Below are positions 5,201 to 34,569 of a stretch of 64,000 nt of DNA, piece by piece. The DNA lies in contig NC_086126.1 of assembly GCF_963921235.1 (NCBI RefSeq), forward strand, positions 12,400,001 to 12,464,000. Direction: 5' to 3'. The notes under the pieces were generated by a model. That model was not told where the DNA came from and did no database searches. It worked only from the letters and a program-made list of their open reading frames with translations. Within the stretch, counting starts at the first letter, position 1; every line of letters begins with the position of its first letter. The position numbers and the translations under genes were made by a program. Origin of the DNA: Mobula hypostoma (lineage: Eukaryota).

Positions 5201-6427
5201 GTCACCTCACTATAGGAAGGATGTGGAAGCATTGGAAAGGGTACAGAAGAGATTTACCAGGATGCTGCCTGGTTTTGAAAGTATGCATTATGATCAGAGA
5301 TTAAGGGAGCTAGGGCTTTACTCTTTGGAGAGAAGGAGGATGAGAGGAGACATGATAGAGGTGTACAAGATAATAAGAGGAATAGATAGAGTGGATAGCC
5401 AGCGCCTCTTCCCCAGGGCACCACTGCTCAATACAAGAGGACATGGCTTTAAGGTAAGGGGTGGGAAGTTCAAGGGGGATATTAGAGGAAGGTTTTTTAC
5501 TCAGAGAGTGGTTGGTGCGTGGAATGCACTGCCTGAGTCAGTGGTGGAGGCAGATACACTCGTGAAGTTTAAGAGACTACTGGACAGGTATATGGAGGAA
5601 TCTAAGGTGGGGGCTTATATAGGAGGCAGGGTTTGAGGGTCGGCACAATATTGTGGGCCGAAGGGCCTGTACTGTGCTGTTATATTCTATGTTCTATGTT
5701 CTATTAAGACAGAGATGAGGAGGAACTGCTTTTCCCAGAGAGTGGTGAATCTGTGGAATTCTCTGCCCAATGAAGCAGTGGAGGCTGCCTCAGTAAATAT
5801 ATTTAAGACAAGGTTGGATAGATTTTTGCATAGTAGGGGAATTAAGGGTTATTGGGAAAAGGCAGGTGGGTGGAGATGAGTCCAAGGTCAGATCAGTCAT
5901 GATCTTATTGAGTGGCGGAGCGGGCTCGACGGGCCGGATGGCCGACTCCTGCTCCTATTTCTTATGACCAGCAGAGTAAAGGTGGTGGGTGTGTGCAGAT
6001 GGGTGACCACTCCTGGCTCGATACACACAGACACCCTGTAGAGATGTTTTGAGGCCTTTCTGACTGTAATGTGCTCTTGCAGGTGGTGGCGGGGTTCCTG
6101 TACTATCTCACCCTGGAGCTGAGAACCACCGTCTGCAGGAAGAGTTCTCTTTCCCAGGACTGTCCCTTCCACGAGGATCCTCAATATGCCAAGGTGAGCG
6201 ATCAGTGCACTGGTGGTCTCGGGAGTGAGGGGCGGGGGTCCTGTCCCCAGGGACACTGGAACCTGGTGGGGATTCATGAATCTGCTGGGGTACCGGCGGG
6301 AAACTCTTTTAATACTGGCCTCTGCTTTTCCCCGGAGACAATGACCTGTAAATTTCAAGTCCTGCAGCAACTGTGGGTCGGGCCCACGCAGGTGACTGAA
6401 TCTTCTTGCTCCAGGACGGCCAAGTGA
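2295..6427 (+). CDS. Type-2 cystatin, copy 1 (divergent; start codon position is ATC, possibly an incipient pseudogene)
   Basis: Exons 2295-2498, 6083-6193 and 6338-6427 with GT-AG phase-0 introns. Signal-peptide-like N-terminus, [11 protein letters not shown]|VVAG, four Cys, LW in place of PW. First in-frame ATGs at 2325 and 2358. AATAAA at 6842-6847. Confidence 0.8.
2505..2945. repeat. G/A-rich low-complexity tract in cystatin copy 1 intron 1
   Basis: Nearly pure purine with G runs on the + strand. Confidence 0.85.
2946..3536 (+). mobile_element. Older CR1 LINE ORF2 3' fragment, interrupted by a younger CR1 and resuming at 5704-5966
   Basis: LEYCVQFWS-type RT C-terminal motif; the sequence joins up across the inner insertion. 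Confidence 0.8.
3537..5703 (+). mobile_element. 5'-truncated CR1 LINE ORF2 (reverse transcriptase) with stops and a frameshift
   Basis: [43 protein letters not shown] and FADDT motifs; 3' (TTCTATG)n-type tail; TTAA at both junctions. Confidence 0.95.
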
Positions 6428-7512
6428 CCGGTCTGTAGGACCCCGGCGGCACACAGCGTGGCGCGCACCGCTCAGCTAAAGCAATAATTCTGATCACCAG
6501 GTCAAATGGATACGAATACAGCACTTTACCACGGCCCGGGGCGCCTCGTAATGCAATCTCCACAACGCATACAGACAAACGCGAGTGTGTATACACTCGC
6601 TCAGTAATATACATTCCCCAGGCTACTATCTCTCTCTCTCTCTTTCACACGCCATCTTTGAGTTGGAACCCTTGAAAGATGGCTCGTCATAGACATCGAG
6701 GGGCCAAATAACCCGCTCCTGTGCCAGACCGCTGTACGTTCTGTGCTCAGTAGTATTTGGGCTCCAACTCGCGGGCTGACCAGTTATTACCATAATTGTA
6801 TACTGTAATTAATCTGCAAATGTATATTTTTATACTTGCGCAATAAAGTTTTTGCATTCTTAGTCTGCCTGTGTTTGCAATGTTAACAGGGTAACTGACT
6901 GCATGAGGTTAACACAGTACTGACCGCCACGGACTATAGTGAGCCCAGCGATCGTGGTTAGACCCAGCATCTCGATAGGAGCGACCAGTCTCAGTCAGTG
7001 CTGTAATTTCAAACATGGCGGGAGTGTGTGAGACCAGAGGACTCGGCCTCCGAAAAGAAGGTCGTCCTTTTAGGAGGGAGAGGAGTAATTTCTTCAGCCA
7101 GAGTGTGGTGAATCTGTGGAATTGGTTGCCACAAGCAAGCCTTTACGTTTAAGACAGATTGACAGAATCTTGATTGGTCAGGGCATAAAGTGACACGGGA
7201 AGAAGGCAGGAGATCGGGGGCTGGGAGGGAAAATGATGAAATGGCGGAGGAGATTCGACGGGCCAAATGGCCTAATTCTGCCTTCATATCTCACGGCCTT
7301 ATAAAGTGTATTCATCATGGAGAATGTACCGTTTCCCGTTCTCATGCAGGTTTTCTCGTTTCTTTTCCATAGATGTTGAGTTCCTCCAGCATTTTGTGTT
7401 TCTGTGCGCGTTGCTTTGGATTTCCAGCATCTACTCCTTTCTCGTGTTTGCAATGTCACAAAAAGACCAAGACGTAGGGAGATTGCGAATTTGGGGGCGG
7501 AAGCCCCGCAGA

Positions 7513-7543
7513 AAGATGGCGTGGCCAGTGCGGGGCGGAAGTG
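7513..7543 (+). promoter_or_regulatory. Putative cystatin copy 2 promoter motifs (YY1-like; GC-box/ETS)
   Basis: AAGATGGCG at 7513-7521 and GGGGCGGAAGTG at 7532-7543; duplicate of 2204-2233. Confidence 0.5.
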
Positions 7544-7603
7544 ACGAGCGAAGGGCGGAGGAAATGACGCCAACGCCTGTTATTTTCTTTACTGCGTAGT
7601 AAG

Positions 7604-10243
7604 ATGGGTCCGATTCTGGTGGTGGTTTTGGTGTTGATGTTGGCGGCGGCGAAGGTGGGGGCGACCTCCATGCCGGGCGGCCTCAGCCCCGTGGCTACAG
7701 ATGACCCCGGGGTTCTGAACGCAATCGGGGTGGTGGAGGAGGACTTCAACCGCAGGTCCAACAACGAGCTTCACACCGCGGTGTCGAATGTGATATCTGC
7801 CCAAAAACAGGTGATGGGGAGGGAAATAGGGGGAGGGGGAGGGTAGGGAGGGATGGGGAAGGCTGGGTAGGGAGGGAGGCGGAAGGGGTAGGTGGGGAGG
7901 GGAGGGAAAAGGGGTGGGTGGGGAGGCGAGGGGGAAGGGGTGGGGAGGGGAGGCGAGGGGGCGGTGGGGAGGGAGGGGGCGGTGGGGAGGGATGGGGAAG
8001 GCTGGGTAGGGAGGGAGGCGGAAGGGGTGGGTGGGGAGGCAAGGGGGAAGGGTGGGTGGGGAGGCGAGGGGGAAGGGTGGAGAGGGAGCGGGAAGGGTGG
8101 GTGGGGAGCGGAGTGAGGGGGAAGGCTGGGTAGGGAGGGAGGCGGAAGGGGTAGGTGGGGAGGGGAGGAAGAAGGGGTAGGTGGGGAGGGAGCTGGAAGG
8201 GTGGGTGGGGAAGGGAGGGAGGGGGAAGGCTGGGTAGGGAGGGAGGCGGAAGGGGTAGGTGGGGAGGGGAGGGAAAAGGGGTGGGTGGGGAGGCGAGGGG
8301 GAAGTGGGGAGGGGAGGCGAGGGGGCGGGTGGGTGGGGAGGGATGGGGAAGGCTGGGTAGGGAGGGAGGCGGAAGGGGTGGGTGGGGAGGGGAGGGGGAA
8401 GGGTGGGGAGGGGAGGCAAGGGGGCGGTGGGGAGGGAGGGGGCGGAGGGGAGGGATGGGGAAGGCTGGGTAGGGAGGGAGGCGGAAGGGGTGGGTGGGGA
8501 GGCGAGGGGGAAGGGGTGGGTGGGGAGGGGGAAGGGTGGAGAGGGAGCGGGAAGGGTGGGTGGGGAGGGGAGTGAGGGGGAAGGCTGGGTAGGGAGGGAG
8601 GCGGAAGGGGTAGGTGGGGAGGGGAGGGAGAAGGGGTAGGTGGGGAGGGAGCGGGAAGGGTGGGTGGGGAGGGAGGGGGAAAGCTGGGTAGGGAGGGAGG
8701 CGGAAGGGGTAGGTGGGGAGGAGAGGGAAAAGGGGTGGGTGGGGAGGTGAGGGGGAAGTGGGGAGGGGAGGCGAGGGGGCGGGTGGGTGGGGCGAGATGG
8801 GGAAGGCTGGGTAGGGAGGGAGGCGGAAGGGGTGGGTGGGGAGGGGAGGGGGAAGGGTGGGGAGGGGAGGCGAGGGGGCGGTGGGGAGGGAGGGGGGGTG
8901 GGGAGGGATGGGGAAGGCTGGGTAGGGAGGGAGTCTGAAGGGGTGGGTGGGGAGGCGAGGGGGAAGGGGTGGGTGGGGAGGGGGGAAGGGTGGAGAGGGA
9001 GCGGGAAGGGTGGGTGGGGAGGGGAGTGAGGGGGAAGGCTGGGTAGGGAGGGAGGCGGAAGGGGTAGGTGGGGAGGGAGAAGGGGTGGGTGGGGAGGCGA
9101 GGGGGCTGTGGGGAGGGAGGGGGCGGGGTGGGTGGGGAGGGATGGGGAAGGCTGGGTAGGGAGGGAGGCAGATGGGGTGGGTGGGGAGGTGAGGGAGAAG
9201 GGGTGGGTGGGGAGGGGAGAGGGAAGGGTGGGGAGGGAGCGGGAAGGGTGGGTGGGGAGGGGGAAGGGTGGGGAGGGAGCAGGAAGGGTGGGTGGGGAGG
9301 GGAGGGAGTGGGAAGGGTGGGTAGGGAGGGAGGGGGAAGGGATAGGTGGGTGGGGAGGGCGTGGGAAGGGGTGGGGAGGTGAGGGGGCGGTGGGGAGGGA
9401 TGGGGCGGGGTGGGTGGGGAGGGAGGGGGAAGGGGAGGGAAGGATGTGAGGGTGGATGAATACAGAGCTCTGGTGGGGGACTGTCTTATTGATACTGAGC
9501 TCCAGATGATTCGTATCGCATCATTGAACAAAGGGGATGGCGATGGACTTTAGGATGGGGAGGGTGAGGAGAGTAGGGTAGGGTGGGGAGAGGAGGTGAT
9601 AATGTGGGCAGGGGAGGAGGGGGTCGAGAGGGGAGCGGGGTTAGGGTGGGGAGGGGAAGTGGGGGAGGAGAGGGAGAGAATACGGAGAGGGGGCTTGTGG
9701 AGTGTGAGGTGAGGAAGGGATGGGAAGGAAGGGGAAGTGCTGAGGAGTGGAGAGTCGAGTAGGGGCGAGGGAGGGGAAGTTTGCAGGAGGTGGGGAGCAG
9801 AGCGCCAGTGTGGGGGAATTCCCCGAGGCCCAGTGAAAGTAGTTTGTCAGTCGCTGCGCTTCTGACTCTTGCAGGTGGTGTCGGGGTTAATGTACCACCT
9901 CTCCCTGGCGCTGAGAACCACCGTCTGCAGGAAGGTTGAACCTCGTTCAGAGAACTGCCCCTTTCACCAGGACCCTCAATATGCCAAGGTGAGTGATCAG
10001 TGCGCTGGTGGTCTCGGACGAGAGGTGGGGGAGGCGAGTGGGGGGGGGGGTCCCGTCCCCGTTGCAGACTGGAACATGGTGGGGATTCATGTATCTGCCG
10101 GGGTACCAGCGGGGAGCTGAATTTTAATACTGGCCTCTTGTTTCTCCCCGCAGAGAACGACCTGTAGATATAAAGTCTGGTACCGCCCGTGGATCGGGCA
10201 CATGGAGGTGAACAGTGCTGAATGCCACGAGGTGTTACCATGA
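7604..10243 (+). CDS. Type-2 secreted cystatin, copy 2 (136 aa, canonical motifs; at the CST6-syntenic position)
   Basis: Exons 7604-7810, 9875-9988 and 10154-10243. ATG, hydrophobic signal peptide, PGG, Q|VVSG (QxVxG), two Cys pairs, PW. AATAAA at 10477-10482. Confidence 0.92.
7820..9450. repeat. G-rich compound tandem repeat in cystatin copy 2 intron 1
   Basis: Recurring unit ggggaaggctgggtagggagggaggcggaagggg; it produces the spurious Pro- and Gly-rich ORFs. Confidence 0.9.
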
Positions 10244-11217: not shown

Positions 11218-11469
11218 TATAAAGGGTTAGATGTGCCACATTCACCAAATCAAAACACACAATTTTTACACCAAAATGTCCATATTAGGGCCATTCTGAG
11301 CTACTGACACAAATGGCCTCTCATTCATTCATGCATTTATTAATAAATCAGCTTTTTACAGCGTAAAATCTGAAAGACCCCGGTGATTTCGGGTCACTAT
11401 GATCCATAAAGAGCGATTAAGGATTAGTGGGAGGGTTTTCGGGAAGGTTTTGTCTCCGGGCCGCTGCCT

Positions 11470-13609
11470 TCAGAGGAACGCGTCGCACCACTCCTTCAGG
11501 CAACGGTAGCAGTCCTCCGACTGTCTGTTGCCCGCGTAGCATACCTGTCTCATCCAGGTCTTGAAGACGGCCTTGTCCTGCTTCAGCAGCAAGAATTGGC
11601 CCAGCACGTCCTTGGCCTGCATCGGGAGGGAGCGGAGAACAGGAAAAGGCGTTAAACACGCGCGCACGCACACACAAAAACTCAGGAACTCAGCAGGTCA
11701 AGCAACATCTATCCACAAACTTCAGCTCGTTTCCAGGAGAACGGGGTTGAGATGGAAAATGAATCGGCCATCATTCAATGGCAGGCAGACTCGATGGGCC
11801 TAATTCTGCTCCTAAATCGTATGGTTGTGTACACTGGAATTTAGAAGGATGAGAGGGGATCTGATTGAAACATAGAAGATTATTAGGGAATTGGACCAGA
11901 GGCAGGAAACATGTTCCCGATGTTGGGGGAGTCCAGAACCAGAGGCCACAGTTTAAGAATAAGGGGTAGACCATTTAGAACGGAGTTGAGGAAAAACTTT
12001 TTCACACAGAGGGTTGTGGATCTGTGGAACGCTCTGCCTCAGAAGGCAGTGGAGGCCAATTCTCTGGATTCTTTCCAGAAAGAGTTAGATAGAGCTCTTA
12101 AAGATAACGGAGTGAAGGGAGATGGGGAGAAGGCAGGAAAAGGGTACTGATTGTGGATGATCAGCCATGATCACAGTGAATGGTGGTGCTGGCTCGAAGG
12201 GCCGAATGGCCTACTCCTGCACCTATTGTCTATTGTCATTTACTACATTTATCCCATTTTCCCCCTCAACTCTACCCCCACTCCCCCCCCCACCACCACC
12301 TACATAATTGGGGCAGCTTAGAATTTGCTCACCAGCTGTGGTCCAGTGTCCACGGACCGTAAGACCACCGATCGTCAGCACACTATCAGACCCTAGGGCT
12401 TGTGAGTAGCTCTCTTTCAGACCAGTGAAGTTCGGCGTGTTCCCTTCGACTGGTTTTTACTGAAAGCATCCTATCCGTATGGATCGTGGCTTGGCCTGGC
12501 AGCTGCCCGACCCGAGACCGAGACACCACAGAGAGTTGGGCACATCGCCACCCTTCACCCCCCCCCCACCCTCCACGGACTCTGTCTACGGTTCTCGCTG
12601 CCTCGGTAAAGCAGCCGGAATAATCAAAGAGCCCACCTCGGGACATTCTCCCTGCTCCCCCTAGGCAGAACAGGGTAGCATAGTACGGGCTGTTCAGGTC
12701 ACGATGTTAGCCCTTTCCTGCCCGCCACGCCGCCGGCGTTTCGGGCAGCGATGAAAGTCCTCCGACTCTGGCAACGTTCAGGGCTTCCTTCATCGTGTCA
12801 GTGGCTTCCCCTCGGTTTTCACTCCAGTCAGTCCCGGGTGGAGGCTCGGGAATACTGTCGCACTCAGATGGAGAATGATTCTTCACTGCTGTGTCCGTAA
12901 CAGTTTCGTCTGACCAGTCAGCGTTGTTGGCCCCGAACCTGGAGGACCGGCGGACCTCTCTCAGTCTGACCTCTCCCCTTTGACCTGGCATGGGTCAAGA
13001 GCCAAAGAGTCCGGCCAACGTAGCTCTCTGGTTCACTGAAGCAGGCAAGCCTCCAAACCTTACGACACAGTTGTAGTCCTCTCAGAGGCCATGATGTTCT
13101 ACAAACATTTTAACCTACTCTAGGATGAATCTAAGCCTTCCCTCCATTTCTCTGTCATCCATGGCGCTTCAAAGTCTCTTACAAGCGTGCACCGTGCTCC
13201 CACCACTCTGCGTAAGAAAAATCAACTTCCCTCCCGCCCCATATACTTGCCTCCAGTCACCTTAAAATTATTCCCTCTCATATTAGCCATTTCTGCCCTA
13301 GGGAAGGGTCACTGACCCTCCACTGTGTCTCTGCCTCTCCTCGCCCTATACACTCCTGCAACTACAAAAGCATCAGAGCGCGTCCCAGCAGGGGCAAGGA
13401 CAGCTTCCGTCCTGCTGTTAAATGACATGGTCCCCGACTGCGACAAAACTGATTCTCGTCCTTACGATCTACCTCCGCGTGGGATGGCTCCCTGATTGAC
13501 TGCCAACACAGCGCTTTCGGAATCGGTTTAATATCACCGGCATATGTTGTGAAATTTGTTAAATTTGCGGCAGCAGCACAATGCAAGACATGATCATAGA
13601 GTAAGTACG

Positions 13610-13652
<43 letters not shown>

Positions 13653-16600
13653 AATAAACAGAGCAAAAAATAGGAAATAAAAAAGTAGTGAGGTAGTGTT
13701 CATGGGTTCAATGTCCATTCAGAAATCGGATGGCAGAGGGGAATAACCTGTTCCTGAATCCTGGGTGTGTGCCTTCAGGCTCCTGTACCTCCTCCCTGAT
13801 GGTAACATCAGCCCATAAAACACAGGAGCAGAATTAGGCCATTTGGCCCATCGAGTCTGCTCCAACATTCAATCATGGCTGATCCTTCTTTCCCCTCCTC
13901 AGCCCCAGTTCCCGGCCTTCTCCCCGTAACCTTTGATGCCGTGTCCAATCAAGAACCTATCAAGCTCTGCCTTAAATACACCCAATAACCTGGCCTCCAC
14001 AGCTGCCTGTGGCAAGAAATTCCACAAATTCACCTCCCCCTGGTGAAAGAAATTTCTCCCCATCTCTGTTTTAAATGGACGCCCCTCTATCCTGAGGTTG
14101 TGCCCTCTTGTCCTAGACTCCCCCACCATGGGAAACATCCTTTCCACATTTACTCTGTCTAGGCCTTTCAACATTTGAAAGGTTTCAATGAGATCCCCCC
14201 TCATCCTTCTGAATTCCAGCGAGTACAGACCCAGAGCTTCCAAATGTTCCTTGTATAATAACCCTTTCATTCCTGGAATCATCCTTGTGAACCTCCTCTG
14301 GGCCCTCTCCAATGCCAGCACATCTTTTCTAGGATGAGGGGCCCAAAACTGTTCACAATACTCCAGGTGAGGCCTCACCAGTGCCTTATAAAGCCCCAGT
14401 TTCACATCCCTGCTCTTGTATTCTCGACCTCTTGAAATGAATTCTAACATTGCATTTGCCTTCCTCACCACTGACTCAACAATGAGAAGAGGGCATGTCC
14501 TGGGTGGTGGGGGTCCTTAATGACGGACGCCGCCTTTCTGAGGCATCGCTCCTTGAAGATGTCCTGGATACGACGGAGGCTGGTGTCCATGATGGAACTG
14601 ACTGAGTTTACAACTCTCTGCAGCTTGTTTCGATCCTGTGCAGTAGCCCCCCCCCCCTCCCCAATGTCAGATGGTGATATGGCTGGACGGCAGTCTCTGT
14701 AACTGTAACACTTTGTGGTGATTTTCCCTCCCTGTAGCTCGATGTACTGCTGTTACGCGATCATCAGCATGGTCGGCAGGTAAAATAAAGCCTTTCACTG
14801 TGCCGCAGAAATGGAGCCGTAGAGAACTCTAGCTCTGAAATGGGCCCTGCCCAGCCGATCTTCTGCCCCGGCCCCTTGACCTGCAACCCGGGCCATAGCC
14901 CTCCATCCCCCTCCCATCCATCGACCTATCCGAACTTCTCCTTAAGTAAAAAGGTTACATTCCCCACTTGCCCTGGCAGCGCGCCCCCGCCCTCTGAGCG
15001 AAGCATTTTCCCCTCAGGTTCCCCCTTAAATATCTCACCCGGCACCCTCAAACCACGAGCTGTAAGTTCTTGTCTGACCTGACCCCAGTCGGAAGCGCCT
15101 GCTTGCATTGACCATTGTGTGAACGTTTCGGTAACATTTGAGTGGTCTTGGATATATGCTGTTTGAGTAAGCATTCTTGTTCGTTTAAATAATTTATTAC
15201 GGGTAATATGTATAAACAGGCGGATTGCGTACGTCATCACGCTACCACGTGGTACGTGCGCGCCTCGCTTGAAGTCAACACAAAAGTTAGACCCCCGTTA
15301 CCGGACACCCGTGTCTTCCTGTGAATTAGTTTAATGTTACAAAGCGTTACACCCTCTGGATACCTCGATCGAATCTCCCCTCATCCTGTGTCCCAGGAAA
15401 TAAGATCCACCTTTCCCGGTAGCTCAGGTCTCACGTCCCGGCAACATCCTTGTAAAATTTCTCTGCGCCCTTTCAATCTCATTGACATCTTTGCTGTCGG
15501 TCGGTGACCGGAACTACACACAATACTCCAAATTAGGTCCCGTCCACGTCTTGTGGAACGTCAACATCACACCTCATTATTTAGTTCATCACAATAATAA
15601 ATCAGTTCTCTAATTTAACTCATTATTGCTCAGCCCCCACAACAAGGTTTGGTTTTTGTGAAGGATTTTAGGGTTTCTCAGATGGGAGACGAGAGGGCGT
15701 ACAGGAGCGGGATGTACCAGCTGGTGGAGCGGTGCCCCAGCAACAACCTGGCACTCAACTTCAGTAAGACCAAAGAGCTGATTGTGGACTTCAGGAAGGG
15801 TAAGATGCGGGGACACGTACCAATCCTCACAGAGGGATCAGAGGTGGAGAGAGTGAGCAGCTTCAAGTTCCTGGGGTTCAACATCTCTGAGGATCTAACC
15901 TGGTCCCAACATATCGATGCAACTACAAGGAAGGCACGACAGCAGCTATATTTCATTAGGAGTTTGAGGAGATTTGCTTTGTCACCTAAAACACTCGCCA
16001 ATTTCTACAGATGTACCGTGGAGAGCATTCTGACCATTTGGTATGGGGGTGCGGTGGGGGCTACTGCACAGGATTGGAAGAAGCTACAGAGAGTTGTAAA
16101 CTCAGTCAGCTCCATCATGGGTACCAGCCTCCATGGTATCCGGGACATCTTCAAGGAGCGGTACCTTATTAAGGACCCCCACCACCCAGGACATGCCTTG
16201 TTCTCATTGTCACCATCAGGGAGGAGGTACAGAAGCCGGAAAGCACACACTCAACGATTCAGGAACAGCTTCTTCCCCTCTGCCATCCGGTTTCTCAATA
16301 TACATTGAACACATGAACACTACTTCACTTTTTAAAAAAAATTCTACTTATTTAATTTAACTATTGAATTTACATGTACTTACTGTAATTCACAATTATT
16401 TTCTATATTATTATTTTCTTCTATTGTGCTGCTGCCACAAAGACAACAAATTTCACAACATGTGCCGGTGATATTAACCTGCTTCTGATTCTAATGTCGT
16501 CCTTGCCAATCCCGGCCCCTTGGATCAGAGGGAGGAGCCATTCCCCAACCACCGCCACCCCCCCCCTCCCGTCTCCACCCCTCTCACCTTGCAGAAGCCC

Positions 16601-18902
16601 TTCTCCTCCAGGCGGCCCCCGAGGACCAGTCCGATTCCAGCCAGCTCCCTGACGGACTTCTCCTTCATCGGTTCCAGCACAAAGTTCTTGTGCTTCTGCG
16701 ACGTCGTGGCGACGGGGTGGAGAAGAGTTTTCTCTGGGAGGAAACACGAAGATGTCATTATCAGCGGGGTGTAAGGACCCCGGGGCCTGACTGGCTGCAT
16801 CACAACCTGGTATGGGAACACCAGCGCCTTTGAACAGAAAATCCTACAAAAGGGCGGTGGGTTCGGCCCAGTACATCACCGGTTACCATTGAGCACATCT
16901 ACGTGAAACGCTGTCATAGGAAAGCAGCGTCCATCAACAGAGATCCCCACAACCCAGGCCGTGCTCTCTTCTCGCTGCTGCCATCAGGTAGAAGGTACAA
17001 GAGCCTCAGGACTCGCACCACCAGGTTCAGGAACAGTTACTACCCCTCAACCATCAGGCTCCTGAACAAAAGAGGGTAACTACACTCACTTGCCCATCCA
17101 TTGAGATGTTCCCTCAACCAATGATCTCACTTTACGGACTCTTTATCTCATGTTCTCGTTATTTATTGCAATTTCTTTATATTTGCATTTGCACAGTTAG
17201 TTGTCTTCTGCACTCTGGTTGATCTTTCATTGATCCTGTTTACAGTTACTATTCTATAGATTTGCTGAGTATGCCCGCAGGAAAATGGATCTCGGGGGTG
17301 TACGTATATGATGAGGTATATCTACTTTGAGAAGACACAGCACAGCCCCTGCTTCATTAGGAGTATGAGGAGATTCGGAGTGACTCCAAAGACTCCTTGT
17401 AAGTTTCTGCAGATGTTCCACGGAGAGTATCCTGTCTGGTTTGGACCCACCTCCCTTAGAGAACAGGGTCAGAAAAAGCTGCAGAGAGCTGTAAATTCAC
17501 CCTGTTCATGCCCCCCCCCCACCATCGAGGACATCTTCAAGTGGCGATTTCTCCATCGTTAAGGACCCCCACCACCCAGGACATGCCCTCTTCTCATTGC
17601 TACCATCAGGGAGGAGGCGCAGGAGTCTCAACATTTTAGGTACAGCTTCTTCCCCTCCGCCACCAGATTTCTAAACAGTCCATGGGCTGGCCACATACTT
17701 TGCACAGCCGACATTGATCTACGCATAATTAGCCAGTCGGCAAAGTCCAATAAGAAGAAGTTAGGATTAAACAGAGTGGCCATTGTGTGAGTGGGGAGTT
17801 GAGGCTTTGGCGAGAAGAGCAGTTTTTTTCTTTCTTATTACACATTTAGTGCAGTGGAGATGCCAGACGGGATAGCGGAATGCTTGGGGGATGTGGGAAG
17901 GCAGGGAGACCTCCAGTGTCCCTGATATCTACAGCTGCAAGAGGTTCATCCAGCTGCAGCTTCTAACAGTCCGTGTCAAGGAGTTGGAGCTGGAAATGGA
18001 TGAACTCCGGATCGGTCGGGAGGCTGAGGAGGTAGCTACACCCAAGGTGCAGGACACAGGGCAAAGAGTGGAACTTTCGCTCTGCATTTCTCACTGGACA
18101 GGTCAGAAGGAGTTTTACCCTGAATCTTATCCCAGGAGTGTGTGATGGGATAGTGTAAGAGAGCGCCATCTAGTGTCCGACCCTGGGAGTGTGTGATGGG
18201 ACAGTGTAGAGAGATCGCCATCTAGTGTCCGGCCCTGGGAGTGTGTGATGGGACAGTGTAGAGAGATCGCCATCTAGTGTCCTTTCCTGAGAGTGTGTAA
18301 TGGGATTGTGTATAAAGGGAGCTTCAGTCTGTGTCTGACCCCAGGTGTGTGTGATGGGACGGTGTAGATGGAGCTTCACTCTGTATCTGACCCCGGGAGT
18401 GTGTGATGGGACGGTGTGGAGGGATCTTCACTCTGTGTCTGACCCCGGGGGTGTGTGATGGGACGGTGTAGAGGGAGCTTCACTCTGTGTCTGACCCCGG
18501 GAGTGTGTGATGGGACGGTGTAGAGGGAGCTTCACTCTGTGTCTGACCCCGGGAGTGTGTGATGAGACGGTGTAGAGGGAGCTTCACTCTGTGTCTGACC
18601 CCGGGAGTGTGTGATGGGACGGTGTAGAGGGTGTTTCACTCTGTGTCTGACCCCGGGAGTGTGTGATGAGACGGTGTAGAGGGAGCTTCACTCTGTGTCT
18701 GACCCCGGGAGTGAGTGATGGGACGGTGTAGAGGGAGTTTCACTCTGTGCCTGACCCCCGGGAGTGTGGCAGACACTCCGGACGGTGCGGAGCGAGCGCC
18801 ATCTAGTGTCCAAGGAGCAAACAGAAGTGACAAACTCCTCCCGAACACTCACTCACCTTTATCCAAGTTTTCATGATTGATAATAGAAGTTCGCAATTCC
18901 AT
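11470..18902 (-). CDS. Barrier-to-autointegration factor-like paralog, 112 aa with a 23-aa N-terminal extension
   Basis: Exons 18902-18857 (gag[19 protein letters not shown], phase-1 AAG|gtgagt donor), 16733-16588 (after cccag; [14 protein letters not shown]...AGIG...GFCK|gtgaga) and 11616-11470 ([12 protein letters not shown]...EWCDAFL*). AATAAA on the - strand at 11341-11336. 55 of 89 core residues identical to the neighbouring BANF1 by manual alignment. Confidence 0.85.
11830..12237 (+). mobile_element. CR1 3' end fragment
   Basis: [10 protein letters not shown]...FFTQRVV.LWN.LP motif and a (TATTGTC) tail. Confidence 0.85.
13617..13650. repeat. (GT)n microsatellite
   Basis: Visible directly in the sequence. 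Confidence 0.95.
13810..14480 (-). mobile_element. CR1 3' fragment
   Basis: ORF 13899-14471 contains [12 protein letters not shown] and RFTRMIPG. Confidence 0.9.
15660..16500 (+). mobile_element. Rex1/Babar-like LINE RT C-terminal fragment
   Basis: [37 protein letters not shown] and [12 protein letters not shown]; related pieces at about 14480-14650, 16785-17300 and 17330-17680. Confidence 0.8.
17720..18060 (+). mobile_element. CR1 ORF1 fragment (zinc finger/coiled coil)
   Basis: MWE...[24 protein letters not shown] resembles the ORF1 at 29489-29926. Confidence 0.65.
18131..18811. repeat. 52-bp minisatellite array in intron 1 of the BAF paralog
   Basis: Unit gggagcttcactctgtgtctgaccccgggagtgtgtgatgggacggtgtaga; period of 52 verified (18481 to 18533). 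Confidence 0.95.
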
Positions 18903-19299
18903 CTCGGGCTGCTAGCGAACTGCGCTTGTCTCCGCTTCCTTCGTCTCTGCTGCTTTGAAGCGGGACGCGTCGAGGGGAAGGCAGCCCAGACTGTCACAAA
19001 GGTGAGCCTTTGTGACCTGACCAACAGCTGCTGGGGGACCAGGCCCACTGTGACGTCCCGCGTCTGTCAGTGGAGGACGGGGGAGGGGAGGCGGGGGGTT
19101 GTGTCAGACTGCCAGGGCTCGTCTCCCCCGCTCTCCGGGGACAGATTTTCTGCGCTGGTGGGCCCGGAATTTATTCGCACAAGGGGCGATGAATCTCCGG
19201 AGTCCTCAACACAAGTCGGAACTGTGATCGTTGGAGCACAGGAGACCAGGCTCGATGGGCTGAATGGCCGAATTCTGCTCCAGCGGTCTTGTAGAAAGT

Positions 19300-25553: not shown

Positions 25554-28500
25554 TTACAGGAAGGCGTCGCACCACTCCCGCAGACAGGTGTGGCAGTCGT
25601 TGCTTTGCTTGGAGTTGGCCTGGCAGGTGTCCTTCAGCCACTCCTTGAACAGTTCCTCGTCCTTCTTCAGGACCAGGAATTGGCCCAGCACCACGTACGC
25701 CTGGGGGTGAGGGAGGGAGGGAGAGAGAGAGAGGTCAGCACACAGCTCCCGCAAACAAGCCGGCGTACAAAGCAGAGATCTCAACTATACCGAGCCCTTC
25801 AGCCAGTTTGGAACAGCGCAATTCAGCTGGCTTAGGCTTGTTGGCAAAGCAAACCGTAAAAGAGACAATAATCCTACAAACCCCACATGCCTTCTCCCCC
25901 AACCCCCATAACATTAGTGCAAGATTTCTAATCAGCCAATCAGGTGACAGCATTTCATAGCAACATAGAAAATAGGTGCAGGAGTAGGCCATTCAGCCCT
26001 TCAAGCCTGCACCGCCATTCAGTATGATCATGGCTGATCATCCAACTCAGAACCCTGTACCTGCCTTCCCTCCATACCCCCTGATCCCTTTAGCCACAAG
26101 GGCCACATCTAACTCCCTCTTAAATATAGCCAATGAACCGGCCTCAACAGTTTCCTGTGGCAGAGAATTCCACAGATTCACCACTCTCTGTGTGAAGAAG
26201 TTTTTCCTAATCTCAGTCCTAAAAGGCTTCCCCTTTATCCTCAAACTGTGGCCCCTCGTTCTGGACTTCCCCAACATCGGGAACAATCTTCCTGCATCTA
26301 GCCTGTCCAATCCCTTTAGGATTTTATACGTTTCAATCCGATGCCCCCTCAATCTTCTAAATTCCAACAAGTACAAGCCCAGTTCATCCAGTCTTTCTTC
26401 ATATGAAAGTCCTGCCATCCCAGGAATCAATCTGGTGAACCTTCTTTGTACTCCCTCTATGGCAAGGATGTCTTTCCTCAGATTAGGGGACCAAAACTGC
26501 ACACAATACTCCAGGTGTGGTCTCACCAAGGCCTTGTACAACTGCAGTAGTACGTCCCTGCTCCTGTACTCGAATCCTCTCGCTACAAATACCAGCATAC
26601 CATTCGCCTTTTTCACCGCCTGCTGTACCTGCATGCCCACTTTCAATGACTGGTGTATAATGACACCCAGGTCTCATTGCACCTCCCCTTTTCCTAATCG
26701 GCCACCATTCAGATAATAATCTATTTTCCTATTTTTGCCACCAAAGTGGATAACTTCACATTTATCCACATTAAATTGCATCTGCCATGAATTTGCCCAC
26801 TCACCCAACCTATCCAAGTCACCCTGCATCCTCTTAGCATCCTCCTCACAGCTAACACTGCCACCCAGCTTCGTGTCATCCGCAAACTTGGAGATGCTGC
26901 ATTTAATTCCCTCATCCAAGTCATTAATATATATTGTAAACAACTGGGGTCCCAGCACTGAGCCTTGTGGTACCCCACTAGTCACCACCTGCCATTCTGA
27001 AAAGGTCCCGTTTATTCCCACTCTTTGCTTCCTGTCTGCTAACCAATTCTCCACCCACACCAATACCTTACCCCCAATACCGTGTGCTTTAAGTTTGCAC
27101 ACTAATCTCCTGTGTGGGACCTTGTCAAAAGCCTTTGAAAATCCAAATATACCACATCCACTGGTTCTCCCCTATCCACTCTACTAGTTACATCCTCAAA
27201 AAATTCTATGAGATTCATCAGACATGATTTTCCTTTCACAAATCCATGCTGACTTTGTCCTATGATTTCACCACTTTCCAAATGTGCTGTTATCACATCC
27301 TTGATAACTGAGTCCAGCAGTTTCCCCACCACTGACGTTAGGCTAACTGGTCTATAATTCCCCGGTTTCTCTCTCCCTCCTTTTTTAAAAAGTGGGGTTA
27401 CATTAGCCACCCTCCAATCCTCAGGAACTAGTCCAGAATCTAACGAGTTTTGAAAAATTATCACTAATGCATCCACTATTTCTTGGGCTACTTCCTTAAG
27501 CACTCTAGGATGCAGACCATCTGGCCCTGGGGATTTATCTGCCTTCAATCCCTTCAATTTACCCAACACCACTTCCCTACTAACATGTATTTCGCTCAGT
27601 TCCTCCATCTCACTGGACCCTCTGTCCCCTACTATTTCTGGAAGATTATTTATGTCCTCCTTAGTAAAGACAGAACCAAAGTAATTATTCAATTGGTCTG
27701 CCATGTCCTTGCTCCCCATAATCAATTCACCTGTTTCTGTCTGCAGGGGACCTACATTTGTCTTTACCAGTCTTTTCCTTTATACATATCTATAAAAGCT
27801 TTTACAGTCCGTTTTTATGTTCCCTGCCAGTTTTCTCTCATAATCTTTTTTCCCCTTCCTAATTAAGCCCTTTGTCCTCCTCTGCTGAACTCTGAATTTC
27901 TCCCAGTCCTCAGGTGAGCCACTTTCTCTGGCTAATTTGTATGCTTCTTCTTTGGAATTGATCCTATCCCTAATTTCTCTTGTCAGCCACGGGTGCACTA
28001 CCTTCCTTGATTTATTCTTTTGCCAAACTGGGATGAACAATTGTTGTAGTTCATCCATGCGATCTTTAAATGCTTGCCATTGCATATCCACCGTCAATCC
28101 TTTAAGTGTCATTTGCCAGTCTATCTTAGCTAATTCATGTCTCATACCTTCAAAGTTACACCTCTTTAAGTTCAGAACCTTCGTTTCTGAATTAACTATG
28201 TCACTCTCCATCTTAATGAAGAATTCCACCATATTATGGTCACTCTTACCCAAGGGGCCTCTCACAACAAGATCGCTAATTAACCCTTCCTCATTGCTCA
28301 AAACCCAGTCCAGAATAGCCTGCTCTCCAGTTGGTTCCTCGACATGTTGGTTCAAAAAACCATCCCGCATACATTCCAAGAAATCCTCTTCCTCAGCACC
28401 TTTACCAATTTGGTTCACCCAATCTACATGTAGATTGAAGTCACCCATTATAACTGCTGTTCCTTTATTGCACACATTTCTAATTTCCTGTTTAATACCA

Positions 28501-31500: not shown

Positions 31501-32936
31501 CCCGAACGCCTCTAAAATGGTGAAATCGAACCCGTCTCCACCACTTCCACTAGCGGCTCGCTCCACAGACTCACCACCCTCTTAAATATTTCACCTTCCA
31601 CCCCTAACCCTTGACCTCTAGCTCCAGCCTCACCCGACCCAATTTGAGAATTCCACAGATTCAACTCCTCTCGGGGGCAGGTGGGGTGAGGGGGAGTCTT
31701 TCCTCCTCATCTCCAATCTTATTGTCGAACAGGAGGGATCTTCCTAATCCCTGACGTATGGCGTGAAGTTTGTTGTTTTGTGGCAGCAGTATATCTCGCC
31801 AAAGTTCTGCACCCCCAGGCTCAATAGAACATGTCCAATTCGTTCTGCTGTCACTTACCAGCGAAAACAACTTTCCTGACCAGCTTGCCCGACAAGTTAT
31901 AACTTTGCACGGTCCCTTCTCATTCTTCTGAATACCACACTCGCCAGCAGTTCGTCCCACAACCTCACCACTCTCCGAACGAAGCTCCCCCTCGGGTTCC
32001 CCTCAAACATTTCACCTTTCACCCTTAACCCACGACCTCTGGTTGCAGTCCCAACTTCAAAGGCAAAAGCCCGCTGGCATTTACCCAGGTTGGCTGTCTT
32101 GTTGCCGATTGGCGGGTTGGGGGGTTTGGAAGAGTGTGGAGATTTGGGGCTTGTTGTTGAACTTTCTCCACACGGGCGATGTTAGGTTTTTTTGTGTGCA
32201 GTGGAGGGGGGTTTGGGGTTTGACGTTATCGCCCCTGTTTTTTTCTCCCCCTTGCGGCCGATATGTTAAGATTTTTTTGCGAGGGAGGAGTTTAGGGATT
32301 GACGTTCAAGCTGCTGTTTTCAGGGTGGGCGATCTGTTAGTTCTTGTGTGAGTGGGGGGGTGCAGTTTGCGAGGTTTCTTTCTCGTGATGCCTTCTCTTT
32401 CAACGATTTCCACGGTCTTTCTCTATTTCGTGGCTATCTGGAGAAGTTGAATCTCAGAGTTGTATCGTACGTGCTTACTTTGAAAATGAAATGAACCTTC
32501 TGAACCATCAAAGATTCGTACACCTCTGTCCATATCATTCGGTACTGGTGACAATAGACAATAGGTGCAGGAGCAGGCCATTTGACCCTTTGAGCCAGCA
32601 CCAGATCCAACAAGCTACCGATCGCTAATGTCCTGCTGTTAGTCTCGGTGTACTTTAGAGTTTAGGGAGATTTGACCGAGGACAAGACAGGCAACGGCTC
32701 TCCCACTTCCACCGAGTGAACACTCAGAGTACCCTCAGTTCTGCAGGAGGATCCGGTGGGTAACGAGTGAGGGAGGTAGGGGATTGGGGGGTGGGGGAGG
32801 TTTGACTGCTCACCTTGTCAAATCCTTGATCTTCCAACCTCTGGCCGAGGGTCTCGCCAATCCCCGCCAGGCACTTCACGGACTTCTCGCCCATGGGCTC
32901 GGCCACGAAGTCGCGGTGCTTCTGTGACGTCGACAT
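25554..32936 (-). CDS. BANF1: Barrier-to-autointegration factor (89 aa)
   Basis: Exons 32936-32814 ([18 protein letters not shown]...GFDK|gtgag) and 25700-25554 (cag|[14 protein letters not shown]...EWCDAFL*). Acceptor 1 nt upstream of the ATG. AATAAA on the - strand at 25035-25030. Confidence 0.97.
25956..30170 (-). mobile_element. Near full-length CR1 LINE in the BANF1 intron: CpG-rich 5' UTR, ORF1 (zinc finger plus SGNH esterase), ORF2 (APE endonuclease plus RT), disrupted
   Basis: [14 protein letters not shown]; IGDS and HIGTND esterase blocks; NARS, ITET, GDFN and SDH endonuclease motifs; [10 protein letters not shown] and FADDT; frameshifts near 29530, 27125 and 27780; 3' microsatellite tail. 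Confidence 0.95.
30440..30985 (+). mobile_element. Penelope-like fragment (GIY-YIG remnant and pLTR)
   Basis: GLWYIGKT motif, [17 protein letters not shown]-coding region, and a hammerhead-like core at 30947-30980. Confidence 0.75.
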
Positions 32937-33809: not shown

Positions 33810-34045
33810 GGTGCTAACGACGGTTTACAAGGCCGGCGACCCGGGTTCAATTCCCGCCGCTGCCCGTAAGGGGCTTGTACGTTCTCCCCGTGACCGCGGG
33901 GGTTTCCTCCGGTTTCCTCCTGCAGACCAAAGACTGACCGATTAATGGGTCATTGTAAATTGCCCCGTGATTAGGCTCGGGTTAAATCCGGGGTTGCTGG
34001 GTGGTGAGGCTCGAAAGGCCCATTCTGCACCGTATCTCAATAAAA
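33810..34045 (+). mobile_element. V-SINE-like tRNA-derived SINE
   Basis: GGTTCAATTCC B-box, then gtacgttctccccgtgaccgcgggggtttcctccgg, ending ctcaataaa. Confidence 0.65.
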
Positions 34046-34569
34046 CAAAAGATATTTACAGGAAGGGAGATATGAAAATAAAACTAGCGTAATACAACAG
34101 CACACAGTAAAATGCCCCGTTAACACCACCAAAGTAAATGGTAGATGACAGGATTCGGGAGAAGGAGAAAGGATTTGTTGAAGATGCAGAAACCACGAGA
34201 TTATCAGCAAAGCAGTGGGGGCAAGGATAAGATCCCCGGACCCAGCAGCCTGCAGACCTAGGGGGTCAAAGGGAAGTGGGAACAGGTATTGGGGAAGCGG
34301 TGGCTGGAATCCACCTAAACTCTCTGCATTCCCGGGGTTGCGAGGCAAAAGCAGAAACGGGAGATGGAGGGTGGACAGAGCAGGAAACCAGTGGCTGAGA
34401 GTCTCAAGTCTGGGGGGGGGCACGAGGAAGGTAGGGGGAAAGAGGGAGGGATTGAGGGAAAGGCAGGTAGGGTGAGGGGGACAAGAGAATGGAAGGGGTG
34501 TGAGAAGGTGTTGTGTGGGGTGGGGGGAGGGAATGGTTTACGGTGGGGAAGGATGTGAGAAAGTGTCAT

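Follow-up and report, generated by a model that had tools for sequence, protein, structure and literature searches.

A divergent BAF paralogue beside BANF1 in Mobula hypostoma, conserved among cartilaginous fishes, with altered partner-binding sites

The small, highly conserved protein BAF serves as a hub joining DNA, LEM proteins and lamins; in humans, its variants A12T and G16R give rise to progeria and motor neuronopathy. BAF-L, the BANF2 product, is about 40% identical to BAF. The BANF2 gene lies in the OVOL2–SNX5 block, which is paralogous to the OVOL1–SNX32–BANF1 block (PMC3380836), and so arose by block duplication. In human BAF, the G16R substitution raises the affinity for dsDNA sevenfold through a salt bridge to the C-terminus of the partner subunit (PMC10099716), and the side chain at position 75 forms a hydrogen bond with DNA.

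The gene described here lies in a 64,000-nucleotide stretch of Mobula hypostoma DNA (the window), with BANF1 6.6 kb upstream of it. The two genes share an intron position between K41 and A42; unlike BANF1, the paralogue has an additional coding exon and a 24-residue N-terminal tail, and it lacks an ATG at the canonical position, where exon 2 carries GCC. The three exons form an intact open reading frame with canonical splice sites (Table 1), and the spliced translation of 112 amino acids is an exact match to P0042 (XP_062892618.1, "BAF A-like" of Mobula hypostoma in RefSeq). The gene is therefore already predicted in RefSeq; beyond such database annotation, no study of a cartilaginous-fish BAF paralogue was found in the literature searched. 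An earlier, sequence-only reading had placed the gene at 11470-16733. Both of its BAF-core exons are present on the minus strand with GT/AG splice sites; the range is too short, since the reading frame begins in the additional upstream exon. This exon encodes the first part of the tail, and its homologue in Leucoraja (L001:10001-10046) has the identical phase. Since Mobula hypostoma has lost the canonical start codon, the 5′ coding exon adds a tail of about 24 residues. Intron 1 contains a further in-frame ATG (16765-16763), from which retention of the intron would yield a shorter tail. The position of the poly(A) signal implies a 3′ UTR of about 150 nt. Of the cystatin-domain exons downstream, the first scores 26 bits against Pfam PF00031 (cut-off 22.2), and the second and third score 20 and 21 bits, slightly under the cut-off.

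Table 1. Features of the BAF paralogue and its neighbours, in window coordinates.
Feature	Position	Strand	Remarks
Coding exon 1, BAF paralogue	18857..18902	-	ATG 18902-18900, 15 codons + 1 base
Donor GT of exon 1	18856-18855	-	sequence reading
Intron 1	16734..18856	-	SINE-like repeats at about 18100-18800
Splice sites of exon 2	acceptor AG 16735-16734; donor GT 16587-16586	-	
Coding exon 2	16588..16733	-	tail remainder EKTLLHPVA, then core residues 2-41 (TTSQKH ... GFCK)
Intron 2	11617..16587	-	LINE reverse-transcriptase fragments and (CA)n run
LINE reverse-transcriptase fragment, intron 2	15649-16308	+	
LINE reverse-transcriptase fragment, intron 2	13899-14471	-	
(CA)n run, intron 2	13599-13662		
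Acceptor AG of exon 3	11618-11617	-	
Coding exon 3	11470..11616	-	core residues 42-89 (AKDVLGQ ... WCDAFL) and TGA stop 11472-11470
Poly(A) signal AATAAA	11336..11341	-	128 nt past the stop
Canonical BANF1, first coding exon	32814..32936	-	M1-K41
Canonical BANF1, last coding exon	25554..25700	-	A42-L89 and TAA
Tandem cystatin-domain exons	6071..10120 (6071-6427, 7604-7846, 9869-10120)	+	downstream of the paralogue, opposite strand

The loss of the canonical start codon raises the question of a pseudogene or an annotation artefact. In keeping with such a reading, an assembly of reads over 13100-19099, a region swamped by LINE and SINE repeats, has zero depth on exon 1, and exon 2 is represented by one contig from the sister species, unspliced across the acceptor. 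No paralogue splice junction was seen in this assembly, from which contigs resembling human genes were silently dropped, so that it is not evidence of silence. Probable RNA runs contain the last exon of the paralogue and its 3′ UTR. With the last exon of BANF1 as a control, the word share is 0.89 in the same small runs, those of study P1, and 0.83-0.94 in large DNA runs; these values suggest that the P1 runs are RNA, and word share alone cannot tell RNA from DNA. The pseudogene reading is hardly credible, as the upstream exon provides an in-frame ATG with matching splice phase in both Mobula and Leucoraja, the reading frame is intact in at least 17 species and the core evolves at a dN/dS of about 0.04. 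It was rejected because conservation contradicts it.

Orthologues of 108-116 amino acids with intact reading frames are found in at least 17 chondrichthyans, including the chimaera Callorhinchus. The order BANF1, paralogue, cystatin gene is seen in the window and in Leucoraja, and partially in Carcharodon, Hypanus and Mustelus. Between Mobula and Leucoraja the core differs at 7 of 88 residues, with a dN of 0.037 and a dS of 0.95; the tail has a dN/dS of about 0.34 and BANF1 one of about 0.03, all from a single ray–skate pair in which dS is near saturation. The BAF core of the paralogue is thus under purifying selection as strong as that on BANF1.

The paralogue is not the BANF1 orthologue, for which we looked for the BANF1 position in the conserved block and an 89-residue protein starting MTTSQ or MSTSQ; that gene is the neighbour at 32936-25554. 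Nor is it found in the OVOL2–SNX5 block, where a BANF2 orthologue would lie: it is a tandem copy within the BANF1 block, between BANF1 and the cystatin gene, and it is this synteny that argues against its being BANF2. In the phylogenetic tree the paralogues form a single clade (support 96/93 and 100/100), the stem of which is long (0.43) and the internal branches very short, and fall outside the gnathostome BANF1 clade. A BANF2-like representative (P0165) adjoins the clade on a very long branch, without support; a search for BANF2 sequences with P0165 matched only P0165 itself, and the Atlas returned only generic BAF clusters. We regard it as probable, as parts of one explanation, that the paralogue arose as an ancient tandem copy of BANF1 and is functional, and that it represents a third vertebrate BAF lineage, separate from BANF1 and BANF2. 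As such it would be an addition to the vertebrate BAF family and not a new type of system.

The paralogue has a very similar predicted fold to BAF. Pfam PF02961 (SAM_BAF) matches it with 132 bits (cut-off 25), residues 25-111 covering positions 2-88 of the 88 in the profile. In the AlphaFold2 model, the core (pLDDT >90) adopts the compact, all-helical BAF fold, and the tail is slightly acidic and predicted to be disordered (pLDDT <50). Foldseek superposes the model on human BAF (PDB ID: 1CI4; further structures 2BZF and 6GHD) with a TM-score of 0.97 and an rmsd of 1.5 Å. The identity is 62% to human BAF over 88 aligned residues and 62% (55/89) to the neighbouring Mobula BANF1. The helix-hairpin-helix elements that contact DNA, namely K6, the G25-I26-G27 hairpin, V29, L30 and the basic residues 33 and 72, are invariant in 17-19 paralogue sequences (contact residues from bioRxiv 10.1101/2023.05.21.541616), K33R and K72R being conservative changes. 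Helix-3 residues L46, G47, Q48, F49 and L50 are likewise invariant, so that the dimer core (L46, G47, L50) is retained. The N-terminal T-T-S, which in BANF1 is phosphorylated by VRK kinases, is kept, as are W62 and the WCDAFL C-terminus. With these elements in place, it is most likely that the paralogue can still dimerise and that it binds or bridges dsDNA under phospho-control.

Human BAF residues were taken from PDB alignments, and residues 42-44 from P0062. On this basis, every substitution listed in the sequence-only reading (A12L, G16K, E28L, D40C, Y43K, V44D, K54Q, L58V, N70G and E at 75) and every residue it gave as kept (K6, G25, G27, G47, F49, L50, W62 and the WCDAFL end) is correct, as are its charge counts: the core of the paralogue has 16 K/R and 11 D/E (+5), against 12 and 15 (-3) in the neighbouring BANF1. 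Its description of a divergent BAF paralogue with altered partner-binding sites is borne out by this comparison. L12 and V58 hold for Mobula hypostoma and not as clade traits, since the clade has V, L, G or S at position 12 and mostly A at position 58. E75, together with K8, N9, E22, Y78 and R79, is an ancestral state common to invertebrate BAFs rather than an innovation of the paralogue.

The net charge of the core is +4 or +5 in all 21 sequences of the clade, and nine sites carry states absent from every other sampled BAF: K/R16, a non-acidic residue 40, K43, D44, Q54, a small residue 58 (A/V), Q65, an aromatic residue 68 (F/Y) and G70. Taken together, these argue that the shift in charge and residues did not arise by chance. 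Across BAF-domain proteins the net charge ranges from -6 to +13, with 29 of the 145 other representatives at +4 or above; a value of +5 is unusual only relative to canonical BANF1. The shift falls mostly on helix 4 and on residues 37 and 40, close to the LEM-binding face, and not on the DNA-contact residues; acidic residues are absent from the clade at positions 28, 40, 57 and 61. The paralogue-only sites are not enriched at known interfaces, with 5 of 9 on any interface list compared with 45 of 89 positions overall.

The wide spread of net charge among BAF-domain proteins, and the fact that most of the published DNA, LEM and lamin contact residues are unchanged, would also fit a plain subfunctionalised duplicate, biochemically equal to BANF1 and differing only in the place or time of expression, with neutral or compensatory substitutions. 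We consider this distinctly unlikely. The nine unique states have remained fixed since the divergence of chimaeras from sharks and rays, at a dN/dS of about 0.04, which points to changed constraint and not to drift; furthermore, for one of them, the exchange of G16 for a basic residue, an effect was measured in human BAF (PMC10099716).

That effect also favours the proposal that the paralogue binds dsDNA more tightly than BANF1, since K/R16 is invariant in the clade. As judged from sequence, tighter binding is plausible, and the loss of E28, which is unfavourable for DNA, counts in the same direction. On the other side, the published DNA-contact residues carry the same net charge as in the neighbouring BANF1 (E28L contributes +1 and N75E -1), E75 takes the place of the side chain that bonds to DNA in human BAF, the pseudo-HhH loop is remodelled at positions 68, 70 and 71, and the slightly acidic, disordered tail precedes the DNA-contacting N-terminus. 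Emerging at this point, the new tail could hinder rather than help binding.

For the partners at the nuclear envelope, contacts were taken from PMC6212729. The LEM contacts F39, Q48, L52 and W62 are kept and R37K and V51L are conservative, while L58 and E61 are changed in every paralogue sequence, and the acidic stripe formed by positions 57, 61 and 65 on helix 4 is neutralised throughout the clade. Altered or weaker LEM binding is thus plausible from the sequences. In the lamin contact set only position 12 differs, and it varies inside the clade; altered lamin binding is weakly suggested.

Of the homo- and heterodimer modelling proposed in the sequence-only reading, the heterodimer was run, with BANF1 as the partner. 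The modelled heterodimer of Carcharodon BANF1 and the paralogue core scores 0.89, compared with 0.01 for the best of three controls, a mark that 51 of 78 solved complexes and 2 of 108 mismatched pairs attain; this pass may stem from solved BAF homodimers that the model had already learnt, and it does not allow homo- and heterodimers to be ranked. The pLDDT of the partner is at least 93, and the contacts agree fully (100%) between runs. Residues 14-16, 41, 43-44, 46-51, 53, 85 and 88-89 make up the interface, which is modelled as the same as that of BANF1. K16, K43 and D44 lie at the edge of the modelled dimer, next to L89 and K53 of the partner, with residue 16 set against residue 89 of the opposite chain. 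A change in dimer selectivity, which had been proposed from the substitutions, is not supported: K43 and D44 are indeed at the modelled interface, yet the heterodimer passes.

The paralogue may possibly be able to pair with BANF1 as well, which brings it closer to BAF-L, each being a second vertebrate BAF paralogue. In mammals, BAF-L is a weak DNA binder that forms heterodimers with BAF (review PMC13443024, citing Tifft 2006). By analogy, the paralogue could be mainly a regulator, and not a DNA-bridging homodimer in its own right: its heterodimer with BANF1 would change the binding of DNA or LEM domains by BANF1 in certain tissues, for example the germ line. The canonical interface of the modelled heterodimer and the adjacent genes in the same orientation are in line with this; we nevertheless hold it to be unlikely. 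In contrast to what has been reported for BAF-L, K6, the GIG hairpin, the phospho-sites and the basic residues 33, 64 and 72 are all retained in the paralogue and strongly constrained, which argues for DNA binding of its own, and the complex model does not separate homo- from heterodimer preference.

The best overall explanation, which we consider somewhat more probable than its negation on sequence grounds, is a DNA-binding BAF variant that is partly uncoupled from the canonical nuclear-envelope partners and that may in addition form pairs with BANF1. Four clade-conserved differences from BANF1 would contribute. Besides the added tail, K/R16, K/R43 and D44 at the modelled dimer rim may form extra inter-subunit salt bridges, by analogy with human G16R, in which a basic residue 16 likewise faces the C-terminal carboxylate of the partner; unlike the disease variant, K/R16 is natural and clade-wide and is accompanied on that rim by K43 and D44. 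Such bridges would stiffen the N-terminal region and may raise the affinity for DNA. The acidic face that helix 4 and D40 present next to the LEM-binding groove has become neutral or basic, and this, with the changes at contacts 58 and 61, would weaken or alter LEM-domain binding. The remodelled pseudo-HhH loop (aromatic 68, G70 and N71) would be the fourth difference. The rim residues and the de-acidified helix 4 have been kept for hundreds of millions of years and thus represent evolution-tested substitutions, with which DNA binding could be told apart from dimer dynamics and from LEM/lamin binding.

A bolder version of this explanation appears doubtful. It holds that the duplicate arose before cartilaginous and bony vertebrates diverged, was lost in the latter and acts as a 'G16R-like', salt-bridge-stapled DNA bridger uncoupled from LEM proteins and lamins, for example in the compaction of germ-line or mitotic chromatin. 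If this were true, only cartilaginous fishes would keep the third BAF lineage, and the protein would be a natural experiment that parts the DNA-bridging role of BAF from its envelope-tethering role.

The KAKDVL motif also occurs outside the clade (P0031 and P0033), in a gene that has no introns and a zf-AD gene as its neighbour, probably of arthropod origin; this likeness is attributed to convergence and not to kinship.

The window contains exactly two BAF-like genes, located by tblastn with the paralog's own exons; the canonical BANF1 lies upstream of the paralog in the same orientation, and in both genes an intron with GT/AG ends separates the codons of K41 and A42. The paralog has GCC at the codon aligned to the ATG of BANF1, and just 5′ of this codon there is a strong acceptor, with a polypyrimidine tract followed by AG. 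The 5′ coding exon, read from the sequence, consists of 15 codons and one base, and this last base is completed to a GAG codon by the two that open exon 2. The spliced coding sequence of 339 nt encodes a protein of 112 aa, identical letter for letter to RefSeq XP_062892618.1 (our P0042), "barrier-to-autointegration factor A-like" of Mobula hypostoma, an identity that places the window in this ray or a very close relative; an AATAAA is found 128 nt past the stop. The paralog is already predicted in RefSeq under this generic name; a literature search found no paper describing it. The observation made by the sequence-only reading is thereby confirmed, and extended by a third coding exon and an N-terminal tail (residues 1–23, with 3 K/R and 4 D/E). 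Both introns are filled by LINE reverse-transcriptase fragments and SINE-like copies. An in-frame ATG in intron 1 lies 28 nt 5′ of the exon 2 acceptor; intron retention, or transcription starting within the intron, would give a protein beginning MTSS with a 16-residue tail.

Features of the two BAF-like genes and their surroundings (window coordinates)
Feature	Position	Strand	Basis or detail
Paralog 5′ coding exon	ATG at 18902	minus	sequence read; GTGAGT donor at 18856
Paralog exon 2 acceptor AG	16735-16734	minus	
Paralog core exons	16733-16588; 11616-11470	minus	tblastn
In-frame ATG, intron 1	16763-16765	minus	
BANF1 exons	32936-32814; 25700-25554	minus	tblastn
Cystatin-domain exons	6071-10120	plus	
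LINE fragment	13899-14471	minus	
LINE fragments	15649-16308; 11911-12150; 16903-17079	plus	
SINE-like tandem copies	18100-18800		
Low-complexity tandem repeat	7589-9531		among cystatin exons
G-skewed block	34001-36000		upstream of BANF1

Protein searches recover the paralog, at 108–116 aa, in at least 17 cartilaginous fishes: sharks (Carcharodon, Cetorhinus, two species of Chiloscyllium, Stegostoma, Rhincodon, Hemiscyllium, Mustelus, Pristiophorus, Heptranchias), batoids (two species of Mobula, Hypanus, Narcine, Leucoraja, Pristis) and the chimaera Callorhinchus. The gene order is BANF1, paralog and then an opposite-strand cystatin in Leucoraja (DNA L001), paralog then cystatin in Hypanus and Mustelus, the latter with a BAF-domain fragment upstream, and BANF1 then paralog in Carcharodon. 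Pfam SAM_BAF matches the full domain at 132 bits, and the AlphaFold2 model has a core pLDDT above 90 and a TM score of 0.97 on human BAF (1CI4); at residues 1–20 pLDDT is under 50, which predicts a disordered tail. Between Mobula and Leucoraja (coding sequences from the window and L001), 7 of 88 core residues differ (dN 0.037, dS 0.95, dN/dS ~0.04), compared with 6 of 89 in BANF1 (dN 0.054, dS 2.06, dN/dS ~0.03) and 13 of 24 in the tail (dN 0.32, dS 0.92, dN/dS ~0.34), the ratios being rough because dS is high. By these substitution rates selection clearly constrains the paralog core as strongly as it does BANF1, which excludes a pseudogene reading; judged from its sequence record, the paralog represents a third BAF lineage, conserved and functional, in cartilaginous fishes. 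Callorhinchus milii has the paralog type in three or more distinct copies (P0004, P0050, P0051 and the more divergent P0005), which group in the tree and suggest further lineage-specific duplication. In the window, the cystatin exons are interspersed with a long tandem repeat (GC 0.69, GC skew 0.81) with its G-rich sequence on the plus strand and a 586-aa proline-rich ORF on the minus strand; the strongly G-skewed block near BANF1 is also GC-rich (GC 0.64, skew 0.85).

The paralogs form one clade of 13 sequences in maximum-likelihood trees (support 96/93 and 100/100 in two runs), with a long stem of 0.43 changes per site and very short internal branches, placed outside a clade that groups the BANF1 of sharks and teleosts with the human-type sequence. 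An AU test disfavours a single clade of paralogs and chondrichthyan BANF1 (p = 0.028), while one uniting the paralogs with all gnathostome BANF1 is not rejected (p = 0.26). The paralogs also keep K8, N9, E22, Y78 and R79, each of which occurs in at least some of the invertebrate BAFs compared, whereas the 17 vertebrate BANF1 sequences lack all five. Together these point to a duplication older than the divergence of cartilaginous from bony vertebrates, after which the latter lost the paralog; this reading is likely rather than shown because the trees use only 90 alignment columns and the paralog stem is long. The BANF2 block OVOL2–SNX5 is paralogous to the BANF1 block OVOL1–SNX32 (PMC3380836); from block position, the tandem paralog and BANF2 therefore probably arose separately. 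Duplication of BAF seems to be recurrent, with lineage-specific copies in the coelacanth (P0101 of Latimeria chalumnae, a divergent, long-branch BAF-like protein of 89 aa) and the saury (P0058 of Cololabis saira, 224 aa with two BAF domains in tandem). An intronless BAF-like gene on two metagenome-assembled eukaryotic contigs (L002:10001-10237 and L003:10001-10237), probably from an arthropod given the adjoining zf-AD gene, shares the KAKDVL motif at positions 41–46 with the shark paralog, apparently by convergence.

Compared with human BAF (PDB alignments and the human-type sequence P0062), all ten differences listed by the sequence-only reading (L12, K16, L28, C40, K43, D44, Q54, V58, G70 and E75) are correct, as are all the residues it listed as kept, and its charge counts are exact (16 K/R and 11 D/E in the paralog core, 12 and 15 in the neighbouring BANF1). 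Three of the differences need qualifying: L12 is no feature of the clade, in which position 12 is occupied by V (10 sequences), L (4), G (2) or S (1); V58 belongs to this species, the sister species having A; and E75 is no innovation of the paralog, the site being variable (N in shark BANF1 and N/E/G/R in invertebrates). Among 19 paralogs, 17 vertebrate BANF1 and 12 invertebrate or unnamed BAFs, the paralog-only states are K/R16 (G/A elsewhere), C/T/L/K40 (D/E), K/R43 (Y/F), D44 (V/L/T), Q54 (K), A/S/V/T58 (L/M), Q65 (D/E), F/Y68 and G/R70 (N); nearly exclusive are a hydrophobic residue at 28 (E/D/P), K/R56, the state at 57, S/C/N/T61 (E/D) and R/H64. The core net charge is +4 or +5 in all 21 members of the clade, in contrast with −1 to −3 in canonical BANF1 orthologues, and reaches at least +4 in 29 of 145 other BAF-domain representatives. 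The shift relative to the neighbouring BANF1 is +8, of which +6 falls on helix 4 and at sites 37 and 40, as the sum of E56K (+2), E57A, E61T, D65Q, Q37K and D40C (+1 each) and K54Q (−1).

In the 2BZF structure S4, Q5, K6, G25, G27, V29, L30 and A71 contact DNA, for the most part by backbone groups, and K6 and R75 do so by their side chains; A24, I26, N70, K72 and Q73 are nearby, and binding is helped by K33 and K64 and hindered by E28 and D76 (bioRxiv 10.1101/2023.05.21.541616). The paralog keeps S4, Q5, K6, A24–G27, V29, L30, Q73 and D76 and basic residues at 33, 64 and 72, lacks the unfavourable E28, and has G70, N71 and E75; over the DNA-contact residues its net charge equals that of the neighbouring BANF1 (E28L +1, N75E −1). 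DNA binding by a dimer has most likely been retained. LEM domains contact F39, Q48, V51, L52, L58, E61 and W62, and R37 of the second monomer (PMC6212729), of which L58 and E61 are altered in every paralog. Positions 57, 61 and 65 lie one helical turn apart, and we infer that they form an acidic stripe turned neutral in the paralog. The LEM surface opposite this helix-4 region includes K36 and K37, so that the substitutions may plausibly weaken or alter LEM binding. Of the residues that contact lamin A/C (V11, A12, P14, E83, A87 and F88), the paralog differs at position 12 alone, a site variable among the paralogs. Lamin binding is reduced about 10-fold by A12T and about 3-fold by G16R (PMC10099716); least securely of these proposals, a bulkier residue 12, K16 and the new tail may lower it too. 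The earlier interpretation is partly supported, its "tighter DNA binding" and "altered LEM/lamin binding" standing as testable hypotheses, not findings.

For Carcharodon, a complex between BANF1 and the paralog core was predicted with a score of 0.89 (best of three controls 0.01), a value attained among 78 solved complexes by 51 and among 108 mismatched pairs by 2. The score may stem from solved BAF dimers that the predictor has memorised, and it is silent on affinity. The partner pLDDT is at least 93, the contacts agree 100% over three runs, and the interface is the canonical one (residues 14–16, 41, 43–44, 46–51, 53, 85 and 88–89). The model gives no sign of the dimer selectivity that had been proposed, which is left without support. 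In this model, residue 89 of one chain lies against residues 16 and 43 of the other, and residue 44 contacts 50, 51 and 53, placing K/R16, K43 and D44, charged novelties invariant in the clade, at the rim beside the partner's C-terminal carboxylate and K53. In human BAF G16R, the new arginine makes a salt bridge with L89′, helix 1 is stiffer and the affinity for dsDNA is seven times higher (PMC10099716); the bridge joins the two positions that touch in the model here. By analogy, the paralog may have extra inter-subunit salt bridges; it combines a LEM-facing surface of altered charge with a dimer rim prone to salt bridges.

The T-T-S motif, which holds the VRK kinase sites of BANF1, is conserved in the paralogs (T/N at 2, T at 3, S at 4), as is the basic residue 72 that pairs with phospho-T3 (PMC8053085). 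In the Mobula hypostoma protein the motif is internal, behind the tail; an internal Met also permits short isoforms of 90–91 aa in Callorhinchus and the orectolobiform sharks. Small runs from one "organism A" study contain 0.80 of the sampled words from 11300-11700 (last exon and UTR) and 0.89 of the equivalent BANF1 stretch, against 0.83–0.94 in genome-sized DNA runs; they are probably RNA containing the last exon of the paralog. Over 13100-19099, where LINE/SINE-like repeats dominate the depth in all four runs, the reads gave zero depth on exon 1 and no splice junction, human-gene-like contigs being silently dropped and such holes uninformative. Exon 2 is covered by a single contig only (run X7, 16610-16768), unspliced across the acceptor; its G>A at 16719 gives H21Y, as in the Mobula birostris protein P0039, which suggests that the source, "organism B", is this species or a close relative. 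Contigs of about 400 nt from runs X3 and X4 match a unique stretch of intron 2 (15078-15198) exactly over 109–121 nt before carrying on elsewhere, and could mark an unannotated exon or a repeat boundary.
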